Source: Trichosphaerium sp. ATCC 40318
Lineage: Eukaryota; Protista; Tubulinea
NCBI GenBank assembly: GCA_038496445.1
Contig: JALMLS010000538.1
Coordinates: 62,001-126,000, forward strand
Direction of reading: 5' to 3'
Length of the DNA stretch: 64,000 nt
How positions within the stretch are numbered: the stretch's first letter is position 1; every line of letters starts with the position of its first letter. Under the pieces are notes generated by a model that was given only the letters and a program-made list of their open reading frames with translations, had not been told where the DNA came from and ran no database searches. A program made the position numbers and the translations under genes. Below, piece by piece: positions 22,165 to 26,087 of this stretch.

Positions 22165-23320
22165 TTATTCTTCTAGGGTTTCTTCTTGCGTTTCTTCTTG
22201 AACTTTCTTTTTAGCAGGCCGTGGAGAGAACTGCCCACGGTGTACAGTTACTACCTTAAAACGTTTTTTACGTTTTACTCTTGCTTCTTTCTGTGATATA
22301 TGTTGTATAACTTGCACTGGCTTCTTGCGAGGTTTTCGCGGTTTTGTCTGTTGTGACGTCTGTGTTTGTTGTGGCGTCTGTGTTTGTTTTTGTAGTTGGC
22401 TTTGTGGTGGGCTTTGTGGTGGGTTTTGTTTCTGTTCTTGTGGTTGTGGTACACTAAGGTTGTTCTGCTTTAAAATATTTTTTAACTTGGTCATTTCTCT
22501 CTCCAAACGATTGATTCTACTCTCCATGCCAAGCGCTTTCTTATGCACTTCGACATTGCATGGCGTAATATCAATATTATGGTGCACAATACGCTCAGAT
22601 ATGCTTGGGACAAGATTATCTGCCGTAGATTCCAAGTTGAACAACTTTGCAAGCGTACGGTGTTCTTTAAGCGAGAAATTGTTTTCTACCCAATCTTCTA
22701 CGTTTGAAGTACTAATAAGATTTTCTGTCAAGCGTACAACACTTTGGGCACCGGAATCTGGGGCGTTTTGCTGATAGTGTTGTGGGATATTCTGTTGAAT
22801 GTCATCTATGAGTGTATTTGGCGCTTGCGAAACATTTTGTACGCCTGCGTCAGGGCCTACGAAATTAATAAGCGCTTGTAGAGGCGTATAAAGCGTTTTT
22901 CGTCCATACTAAAGTATTGTGCGTCTATCCAGCCCATCTGGCCACCATTAGCATCTGTGCATTGATAGCGCACTATTCCGCGCCCTGTTCTGACATTTAC
23001 TTTCTTGTTTGTTCTGGTGCGTTTATTTGATTTCACAACATGCGAATATTGCCTCTGAAGTAAGTTTGAGCTAAACTAGTAGAAGCTTGAGTTCACGCAC
23101 GCAAGAATTGTACAATCGAACCTTCAACATGGTAGTAGCTTGGTGAAGTGATTTCTTATGTTTTTTGACTGAATCGGACTGAAACTACAGAGGAAGCAGT
23201 TTGAAATAGCTTTGGCGGGACATATTATTACAATTTCTTGCATCAGAACCTTTGTACAACATAGCAAGCATAACTGAGGTTTTGAGCAAAAATGTCTCGT
23301 GAGTTCTTTTTGGCGCATGA
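22165..23320 (-). CDS. probable nuclear protein: chromo-like segment, coiled coil, Q/T/P-rich and basic tail (start uncertain)
   Basis: Large last exon 22165-about 22830 with coiled coil ESRINRLEREMTKLKNIL, Q-rich tract and KRKKRFK. The upstream exon reads YSHVVKSNKRTRTNKK..VRYQCTDANGGQMGWIDAQYF. Confidence 0.5.
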
Positions 23321-23384
23321 CTGAAGTCACAGAATTGCATGACAACTAAGAGAATAACGTAACTGTATAATGTGAATATCAGAT

Positions 23385-25981
23385 ATGGTTAAATTCTTAC
23401 AGCTGCGTCAGTTTTGGTTACACTTTCGCAAACGTGCTGACAGGAGCTATAAGACAAGCCACCGTACGGGTTGTATTACTGTGTGACAGAATTAATAGAG
23501 CTAGGCGGCGGTAATGGATCAAATGGACAGTTTATATCAAATGTAAAAAGTATCCTTCGCTTTGTAGCTGGGTAGGCGTCAAAGAGCCTCTTATATCCGA
23601 AATGATAACAATCGCGTAGGTCAGTGGCTGTTGCGACACTTTTAGTTGTGCCTTCGTTTCTTGGCAATAAAGCACTCACAAACAACTACAAGAACGGAGT
23701 AGACAAGAATTTCTGCCAGTACAAATCGTTAACTCCTGTTTTACCAAAAGACCATCCTTTCGACCTTGAAGCCATCGATAAGTACTCAAATGAAATCGGT
23801 GATAAGCCCTCAAGCGACTGGGCAGTATCTACATGCACAGGTGAGGTTCATTTTGAAGAAACTTTTGCGCTTAAACTGAGAATCGCTTAGCCATCGCACT
23901 TGGACTTAACTGGCTCACTTTCAGCATGTGGCAAATACCTTCTATAAAAACCATTCTATTAACAAGTTCACGTACAATATCAAGAGTAGTTGGAAGAGTT
24001 GGTCATAATATACTACCACTTTTATGCGCTCCATTATCTGGACCGCGATTGGGTCATTTTTGTGTCAACATGGCATTATTAGTGTACTTAAGCAATTCTT
24101 TGATGCAGCAAGTGAGGTACAGTAAATTATCATCTTCTTGTTTACGTTAAGTGTTGCTAACGTTAGCGTTATAGTGTTGCAGAGTTTTGCAGTCTGTACT
24201 TAACAGGCGCAGCAGCTGGAACTCTTGGAAGTCTTGTTTTTCTTCGTGGAGCTGGGTAAGTTGTTATTTTCTGGATTTGTTGTAGTTTGTTTGTTGAGTA
24301 TACTCTTAGAACTCTTGCAGCTGGTCCCGAAGCTAGTATTGTAGCTTTAGCAATGGCTAATATAGTATTTAAATATAGTGAGCCTGTAATAGGAAAACGA
24401 ACGGACTTGTTTATGTTTGAGGTAAATTCTCACATTCTTCTAGTTTGAAAAATTTCTAAACATTTGTTTGTAGCATTGGATACTTGGCGTATCCATTATG
24501 GCCCTTGCAGGAATAGGATTGCGTAGGCGCTGGAGTCATTTTGACTATGCAAAGATTTTTTTCGGTGGTCAAGGTGGACGTAAGAAAACAAACAGTCTTT
24601 TTCGTACTAATTTGTATTTTTTTCAAAATAGTACTATGGGCATATACGTTTGGACTGCTAATAGGTTCAGGAGATATTACTCGTAGAATATCTCCAAAAC
24701 AAGTTTATCACGGTGAGGCGAGCTTTTTTCAGCCTCATGGTTACGGTACTGTACGTTAGCCAGAAAACATACAAAGCGATAACTAATTTTTTTAGCTCTG
24801 GAACTTGGATTCAACACATGCCATCAAAGGTGAATTCTTAGCAGGTGCTGCACATGGAAATTGTCACGTGATTCTACCCGGTATTGGGCGCGGTACGTAG
24901 GACTATAACCTTGTTATTGTATGAGGATGAGCTAGCTAACTTTGTAAATTTTTTTAGAAGACGCATTTGTGACTTGTTGTGATTATCGTCTTGGTGAACC
25001 TGCTGGAAGTGTATCCTATAAGTTTAAGACGCTAAAAGGTCAATTTCATGAGGGTAAGGCAACTGTACTTAACGAGCACATGGAAGGAAGAGGTAATTTT
25101 GGTTTTTTAAAATATCCAATGTGTAGATGCTTATAATACTATTTAGCAACATGGGCTTGTAGCAATGGCATTTTCTATGGTACTATTGACGTTTTTGACT
25201 AATTTTTACGAAATGTCATGTCATATGTGACATTCTCATTTTTTTCTTAATATAGGCAATGTCAAAGATGGTAAAAAACAGGTGCGACTTTAAAAGTAAA
25301 AGTTTAAATAAGTGATTTTATTATAAAGGGTGGTTTAATGTACAGCTCAGAAACTGAAATTGTGATTAAAAACCTTGAACATGGTAACATGCGTGTTAAG
25401 TTGAAGAGACCATATTATTTTTACGAAGGTATATCAACTTTTACTTTTAAAAGCTGAGCTTCTAACTCGGTATGTTAAGGTGTCACAGACTCAAAATATA
25501 GATACCATGGCGATGGGAAGCTTGTATTCTATAAAGAAGCTTCGCATGCTCCATTCGTACCAGGGCACTTGCAACAACAGTACCCGTCATTGCCAGAGAA
25601 ATTACCTTGGCTAGAGGTCGAAGGTATTTTTAGTTGGTTTTTTTTCGAGACTGAAACTGACGTACGCTTGAAGGTACCTGGAATGGTGGAAAATTTCTGA
25701 GAGGAACTCTTAAGCTTATATCAAAAAATGAAATTTGTCACGTGGAAAAAACAGATAATGGATTGGAAATAAGTGAGAAAGAAGAAGAAAAATTAAAAGC
25801 AAGAAACGAAATAGATTTAGAAGAAAAATCTAGTGTGGAGTATACCTTGGAAGATTTTTTCTTATTACGTCAAAAAGCACAACCTCAACGCTTGTGGCAT
25901 ATATTAAGTTGTGGTTATATACCTGACAGTGCTTTATTCAATACCTATGGTGATATCGTTGAGCCACAAGCAATTTTGTGA
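23385..25981 (+). CDS. rhomboid-like pseudoprotease with C-terminal MORN repeats and predicted mitochondrial presequence
   Basis: Arg-rich N-terminus MVKFLQLRQFWLHFRKR. Rhomboid-like TM motifs LGHFCVNMALL, FCSLYLTGAAAGTLGS, AGPEASIVAL and SHFDYAKIFFG. MORN-like YHGEASFFQPHGYG, GEFLAGAAHG, FYGNVKDGKKQG and YEG..RYHGDGKL. Confidence 0.7.
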
Positions 25982-26087
25982 AATAAAAACGTTTTTGTAC
26001 AAAACAGCTGCTTTATATTGAAATTACTGCCTCGAGCACTGTTGAGAATTGATTAAAAGTGCACAATGCTGGTTTGTTTATATTCAT

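Follow-up and report, generated by a model that had tools for sequence, protein, structure and literature searches.

Does the locus at positions 23385-25981 of the plus strand, within the 64,000 nucleotides (nt) of Trichosphaerium sp. ATCC 40318 contig JALMLS010000538.1 analyzed here (the 64-kilobase (kb) window), encode a single protein in which a rhomboid-type membrane core has lost its catalytic residues and is followed by MORN repeats, and in which membrane would such a protein reside? An earlier note, made from the DNA letters, had proposed a mitochondrially targeted rhomboid pseudoprotease of this kind. Our analysis found that the locus is an expressed, spliced single gene with a membrane core and a repeat tail on one transcript. 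For the whole picture, a mitochondrial rhomboid-like pseudoprotease with a MORN-like tail, the features described below leave the chances about even.

A single spliced gene carries the membrane core and the repeat tail

The window is AT-rich eukaryotic DNA (approximately 36% G+C) with short introns. No long open reading frame (ORF) was found at 23385-25981 on the plus strand, and the region consists of short open segments that can be joined via GT..AG introns. Assembled contigs from four public runs (X1-X4, from three studies), with at least 99% identity to the locus, served as RNA evidence. The gene has 15 exons with a total of 1854 nt including the stop and codes for 617 amino acids (aa) without an internal stop, from the ATG at 23385 to the TGA at 25979-25981. 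All 14 introns are GT..AG introns of 41-76 nt, and each of them was observed as a joint in the transcript contigs. Five introns have lengths divisible by three, and by inspection all five carry an in-frame stop. The gene is real. RNA alone revealed the small exon 2 (23505-23571), and the N-terminal exon chain behind the earlier note had probably passed over it.

A contig of 1391 nt from run X3 spans exon 3 to exon 15 and thus crosses the membrane and repeat halves. Exon 8 by itself codes for LWAYTFGLLIGSG, the end of the last helix, and then for YHGEASFFQPHGYGT, the first repeat unit. Two genes, with separate transcripts for the membrane and repeat halves, are excluded because this contig covers both halves and exon 8 encodes parts of both. 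After splicing, the frame runs on without interruption to YHGEASFFQPHGYG, IKGEFLAGAAHGNC and similar units, as had been claimed.

Rhomboid landmarks in the membrane core

The rhomboid fold is a compact six-helix bundle (PMC12615303). Homology searches were run exon by exon, and the joined sequence was used for residue numbering and for two shuffle statistics. E. coli GlpG and the rhomboids of Pseudomonas, Neochlamydia and Ralstonia plasmids (tblastn) were aligned as comparators; all four are active. From the columns invariant in these four bacterial rhomboids, with the catalytic Ser and His excluded, the landmark pattern H.{3}N.{24}L.{10,35}GP.{45,75}G.{3}G was built. Analysis of the gene product revealed the landmarks in order and with matching spacing: H178/N182, the HxxxN of transmembrane helix (TM) 2; L207 in TM3; G230-P231 before TM4; and G293/G297 in TM6. 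The landmark chain matches 4/4 bacterial rhomboids and the core (aa 178 onward); when the core is shuffled with its composition preserved, the chain turns up in only 2 of 20,000 cases, a rarity that is suggestive and not proof because the test was designed after reading the sequence.

All the core strings on which the rhomboid assignment was first based are present, namely GHFCVNMALLVYL at aa 177-189, EFCSLYLTGAAAG at aa 201-213, AAGPEAS at aa 228-234 and HFDYAKIFFGG at aa 284-294. The best local match of exon 4 places HFCVNMALLVYL on GlpG HILFNLLWWWYL, which is TM2 (hhalign/Smith-Waterman). Exon 7 gives a gapless 34-residue local match with Ralstonia TM5-TM6, with GG on GG (Smith-Waterman), and exon 8 has its best local match at the end of TM6. 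None of the three matches is significant, and all of them fall at the expected rhomboid helices.

A word search with GlpG returned GlpG sequences only, all enterobacterial and at >=78% identity, a set unsuited to a broad profile. In the GlpG-like protein P0005 (NCBI, 403 aa) the TM3-TM5 segment is duplicated internally, with SGPWFGGLSG...LIIF occurring twice; either the assembly is at fault here or an enterobacterial rhomboid has undergone a natural tandem duplication.

Catalytic positions

Active rhomboids are defined by GxSx and A/G-H (PMC12615303). The GxSx motif is absent from the TM4 region of the gene product, where the sequence is AAGPEASIVAL and the sole Ser stands in E-A-S-I. The replacement of the catalytic GASG by AGPEA, as proposed before, holds for the presence of the string and the lack of GxSx; which residue replaces the Ser is ambiguous. 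Counting from the GP (+5/+6) gives V236/A237 as the Ser equivalent, and counting back from TM6 gives S234, 57 residues before F291 (the Ser-His distance is 58 in Ralstonia). In the reference rhomboids the His precedes the first Gly of GxxxG by three residues, a place occupied here by Ile290 (G293-3), and anchoring on the GG pair puts Phe291 opposite the Ralstonia His. The His residues of the core are 161, 178, 263 and 284. None of them occurs at the TM6 catalytic place under either anchoring, in agreement with the proposed replacement of the catalytic-His motif. With no His at the catalytic place of TM6 and no GxSx, the core appears to have lost its protease chemistry.

A displaced dyad, in which Ser234 would work with His284 or His263 in an active intramembrane protease, has to be weighed at this point. 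Ser234 is at the right distance from TM6, as just given, and the oxyanion region retains His178 and Asn182. The same Ser is found in EASI, without GxSx context; His284 belongs to the RRRWSHFDY loop, nine residues before G293 and outside the A/G-H helix context; and His263 is at the start of TM5. We consider such an active enzyme highly improbable.

One argument for inactivation had to be given up. The earlier note read a GPx in place of GxS as the hallmark of iRhoms. G104-P105 does not vary among the four active bacterial rhomboids and precedes the catalytic Ser by 5-7 residues. AAGPEAS has its GP at this same place, where active enzymes have theirs ahead of TM4, and the GP therefore says nothing about iRhom-like inactivation.

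N-terminus and predicted topology

Among the first 49 residues, 10 are Arg/Lys and one is Asp (nine basic residues lie inside exons 1-2, and Arg27 is on the split codon between them), consistent with the Arg-rich, nearly acid-free N-terminal peptide described earlier. The amphipathic moment of the N-terminus reaches 0.51 in an 18-residue window. Seven hydrophobic segments were identified (aa 50-66, 123-140, ~163-190, 201-222, 226-245, 258-278 and 288-312) in a 1+6 arrangement, one segment and then six. The first segment, SVAVATLLVVPSFLGNKALT, which includes SVAVATLLVVPSFLG (aa 50-64), is short, contains Pro, has a mean Kyte-Doolittle value of 1.51 and is predicted to be the extra helix of the 1+6 layout. 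The basic N-terminus shares its side with all the Arg-rich loops, i.e. aa 141-162 (four basic residues), R223 and RRR at 279-281. This charge sidedness of loops and N-terminus fits a seven-helix topology with the N-terminus in and the C-terminus out.

The mitochondrial inner membrane is favoured because of the 1+6 layout, the presequence-like start and the charge distribution. It is the most likely placement on these features, with the C-terminal array predicted to lie in the intermembrane space. PARL has this topology. Rhomboids of the 1+6 form are mainly organellar, and secretory-pathway members carry the extra helix C-terminally (6+1) (PMC12615303). This distribution stands against a placement of the same rhomboid-like pseudoprotease in the endoplasmic reticulum (ER), Golgi or plasma membrane, in which the first segment would serve as a signal anchor and the basic N-terminus would face the cytosol. 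Such a placement would agree with the location of most known rhomboid pseudoproteases (iRhoms, derlins and TMEM115) in the secretory pathway (PMC3149277, PMC12615303, TMEM115 preprint), and it gains from the amphipathic moment of the N-terminus being only moderate and from mitochondrial targeting being read from composition. A cytosolic N-terminus followed by seven helices would make the MORN-like array lumenal or extracellular, yet known MORN arrays are cytoplasmic (PMC8934682). Overall, we regard a secretory location as quite unlikely.

MORN-like units in the C-terminal tail

From approximately aa 313 the protein continues as a soluble-looking region of ~300 residues with 12% Gly. Several YxGxxxxGxxxGxG-like units occur in it, along with an insert rich in Pro and Gln, an acidic stretch of Glu and Lys and a 40-residue tail. 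MORN repeats are 23-residue units with the rough consensus YxGEWx2Gx3GxGx3Yx2G (PMC7725318). Four C-terminal windows, starting at aa 323, 347, 375 and 476, match 5/9 consensus positions where 0.45 would be expected (p=0.0005; shuffles, post hoc), an enrichment of ~9-fold over shuffles. No unit exceeds 5/9 positions, and the units are degenerate and irregularly spaced. No canonical MORN array was found in the 64-kb window. Since dimerisation, rather than lipid binding, is what MORN1 arrays show (PMC7725318), the tail would most simply be a docking or self-association module.

Homology searches and the case for an orphan protein

A number of results weigh against a rhomboid-like core with a MORN-like tail. 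For the core, no Pfam match to Rhomboid was found at E<=10 in any of the 13 exons searched. Purpose-built rhomboid hidden Markov models (hmmsearch --max) gave exon-wise scores of <=0.2 bits, hhalign gave exon-wise probabilities of at most 1%, and the exon-wise collinear Smith-Waterman chain was not distinguished from shuffles (p = 0.16-0.84). Searching exon 4 (74 aa) with phmmer against 1.84 billion representatives returned only four translated junk ORFs; all four are tandem repeats and were dismissed as relatives. Nothing relevant was found in the PDB with phmmer for exons 4, 6, 7 and 14, and no match in the ESM Atlas for exons 4 and 15. Several columns invariant in rhomboids are lost, namely the upstream TM2 His, G72, E76, the Trp of the WR motif, A160 and A163; about half of the invariant columns of the four-rhomboid alignment are not kept. 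For the tail, no Pfam match to MORN was found at E<=10 in exons 8-10 and 13-15, and Gly autocorrelation of the C-terminal region revealed no 23-residue period. We know of no precedent for a MORN array in the intermembrane space. Lastly, both shuffle tests that gave small p values are post hoc, and for a membrane protein shuffling makes a lenient null.

The weight of these results differs. The exon-wise blanks are weak evidence because fragments of 26-74 residues from a divergent membrane protein cannot reach significance in databases of this kind, and the exon-wise Pfam test for MORN is weak because introns split several units. As to the WR motif, no Trp-Arg pair was found in the loop that links helix 1 to helix 2 (aa 141-165), where Arg150, Arg154 and Arg158 are present; this motif of loop L1 occurs in ~80% of rhomboid members and is not universal (PMC12615303).

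The same results could be expected of a lineage-restricted orphan, a seven-helix membrane protein unrelated to rhomboids, with chance motif matches in Gly/Leu/Ala-rich helices and a generic Gly-rich, beta-rich domain as its tail. Every exon-wise homology test is blank or non-significant, as such an orphan would predict, and the same holds for the loss of about half of the invariant columns and the missing Gly period. No relatives of exon 4 or exon 15 were found in protein representatives or metagenome contigs; within the 64-kb window, the gene has no paralogue. The ordered landmark chain, so rare among shuffles, speaks against an orphan, as do three exons whose best local matches lie on the correct rhomboid helices, the ninefold excess of MORN-consensus windows and the little power that short fragments give to homology tests. 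An unrelated orphan is, in our estimate, somewhat unlikely. A rhomboid-like core fold that is catalytically dead is the best reading of the sequence and, in our judgement, a fairly probable one; affiliation of the core with PARL and its analogy to iRhoms are not established. The several MORN-like repeats claimed earlier stand as four units at 5/9, without an exon-wise Pfam MORN match. Hence "MORN-like" appears a fair description, and membership of the MORN family is unproven.

Possible function

Under the rhomboid-like reading, the six C-terminal helices would form a rhomboid-fold core with its structural landmarks retained. By analogy with iRhoms, derlins and TimRhoms, this dead core would hold transmembrane clients rather than cut them. 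The protein would have its N-terminus on the matrix side and extend its repeat array into the intermembrane space. There the array would mediate dimerisation or docking, as MORN1 arrays have been shown to do, and the entire protein would serve as a non-proteolytic scaffold or adaptor. A more specific proposal is that of a mitochondrial inner-membrane pseudoprotease whose MORN array spans the intermembrane space and tethers the inner to the outer membrane in the manner of junctophilins, or that docks clients as a subunit of a complex for import or quality control; we put it forward tentatively, as an unlikely refinement. For now the value of these proposals is limited: short landmarks carry the family assignment, the searches turned up no relatives, and the amoeba is not in use as an experimental model.

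Features of the gene and its surroundings

The coordinates of the 5' untranslated region (UTR) and of the exons are listed in Table 1.

Table 1. Features of the gene in window coordinates, with the residues encoded by each exon.
Feature	Position	Strand	Description
5' UTR	23339..23384	+	transcript 5' end at ~23339; template-switch oligo tail abuts 23339 in an X3 contig
Exon 1	23385..23463	+	aa 1-26 plus 1 nt; MVKFLQLRQFWLHFRKRADRSYKTSH, basic presequence-like start; joint 23463>23505
Exon 2	23505..23571	+	aa 27-49; Gly/Asn/Ser-rich; 2 basic, 0 acidic residues inside the exon; joint 23571>23620
Exon 3	23620..23840	+	aa 49-123; hydrophobic SVAVATLLVVPSFLG, then 55-residue mixed-charge loop
Exon 4	23891..24116	+	aa 123-198; predicted core helix 1 IALGLNWLTFSMWQI, Arg-rich loop, helix 2 with H178-x3-N182 (24055-24069)
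Exon 5	24175..24255	+	aa 198-225; predicted helix 3 EFCSLYLTGAAAGTLGSLVFL; Leu207 = N182+25
Exon 6	24310..24421	+	aa 225-262; predicted helix 4 region TLAAGPEASIVALAMANIVF; GPEAS at 24323-24337; without GxSx
Exon 7	24474..24579	+	aa 263-298; predicted helix 5, RRRWSHFDY loop, helix 6 start AKIFFGGQGG (24555-24578)
Exon 8	24632..24750	+	aa 298-337; helix 6 end LWAYTFGLLIGSG and MORN-like unit 1 YHGEASFFQPHGYGT from 24706
Exon 9	24796..24892	+	aa 338-370; end of unit 1, MORN-like unit 2 IKGEFLAGAAHGNC... at 24823-24891
Exon 10	24958..25092	+	aa 370-415; MORN-like unit 3 from aa 375 (24972-25040), plus a degenerate unit
Exon 11	25147..25179	+	aa 415-426; 33 nt
Exon 12	25256..25281	+	aa 426-434; 26 nt; exons 11-13 together give FYGNVKDGKKQGG, a weaker MORN-like unit (4/9)
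Exon 13	25329..25428	+	aa 435-468
Exon 14	25480..25623	+	aa 468-516; MORN-like unit YHGDGKLVFYKEAS from aa 476 (25503-25571), then Pro/Gln-rich insert
Exon 15	25674..25981	+	aa 516-617 and stop; last degenerate unit EGTWNGGKF, acidic Glu/Lys stretch, C-terminal tail

The 5' UTR of 46 nt contains a minimal upstream ORF (ATG TGA) at 23370-23375, ten bases upstream of the start codon, and at position 23384 (-1) two runs have A rather than T. At the other end of the gene, AATAAA is present at 25982-25987, directly after the TGA stop; contig coverage ends at ~25966-25996, and the 3' UTR may be very short. The intron donors are unusually varied (GTACGG, GTAGGC, GTACAG, GTGCGA and GTATAT), and CTAAC/CTAAT-like branch sites occur 10-25 nt before the acceptor in several introns.

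Comparison of the window with RNA contigs of other samples revealed six single-base differences, at 23752, 23787, 25773, 25802, 25840 and 25875. Five of the six are nonsynonymous (D93E, S105L, S549N, E571D and K583R). All are confined to exons 3 and 15, in the loop after the first helix and in the C-terminal tail, and none occurs in the helix core or the repeat units. A test for selection is not feasible, because there are only six polymorphisms.

Upstream, on the minus strand at 22165-22731, lies a long open segment with Gln/Pro/Thr repeats QPQEQKQNPPQSPPQSQLQKQTQTPQQTQTSQQTK and Lys-rich ends. Its start is ~600 nt from the 5' end of the gene, so that the two may share a divergent promoter region.

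Comparison with known rhomboids and MORN proteins

No paper was found that links rhomboids and MORN repeats more than incidentally. Like the mitochondrial 1+6 rhomboid proteases PARL and Pcp1, the gene product is predicted to have one helix ahead of the six of the core; as in these proteases, its N-terminus is basic, TM2 contains HxxxN, a GP precedes TM4 and TM6 is rich in Gly. The strings WRVPS, HMAANM, VYLSAG and FFDHAAHLGG of human PARL appear to resemble WQIPS, HFCVNM, LYLTGA and HFDYAKIFFGG of the gene product, with near-identical spacing. Unlike PARL and Pcp1, the gene product lacks GxSG and the catalytic His and has a C-terminal repeat region of ~300 residues.

The iRhoms (RHBDF1/2) are rhomboid pseudoproteases with large extra domains that act as adaptors (PMC3149277, PMC6451368). 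They are of the 6+1 type, reside in the ER or plasma membrane, carry the iRhom homology domain between TM1 and TM2 and have the hallmark Pro beside the former Ser. In the gene product, by contrast, the TM1-TM2 loop is only ~25 residues long, the extra helix is N-terminal, and the GP is equivalent to the one that precedes TM4 in active rhomboids.

As in junctophilins and MORN1, a MORN-type array of beta-hairpin repeats would be placed on a membrane anchor (PMC8934682, PMC7725318); the units here are only MORN-like. MORN1 arrays dimerise tail to tail (PMC7725318). In junctophilin the repeats are canonical and N-terminal, with a single helix at the C-terminus (PMC8934682), whereas in the gene product degenerate units, unrecognised by Pfam exon by exon, lie C-terminal to seven helices.

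TimRhom I and TimRhom II of Trypanosoma brucei are rhomboid-like proteins of the mitochondrial inner membrane that lack the Ser-His dyad and are non-proteolytic subunits of a complex (PMC5187411). The gene product resembles them, by description, as a dyad-less rhomboid-like protein; a role in import would be pure analogy. The TimRhoms differ in having no repeat domain and in belonging to another eukaryotic supergroup. If the tether or docking-subunit proposal were true, the gene would represent a second, independent recruitment of a dead rhomboid to mitochondrial membrane biology. iRhoms, derlins, TMEM115 and the TimRhoms show that dead intramembrane proteases have repeatedly made good client-holding scaffolds, each defined by the extra domain that it acquired. 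In this series a presequence-bearing 1+6 member with a MORN-type array would, if the assignment is true, be an organellar example with a new partner domain, and it would bring a MORN array into a compartment from which none has been described.

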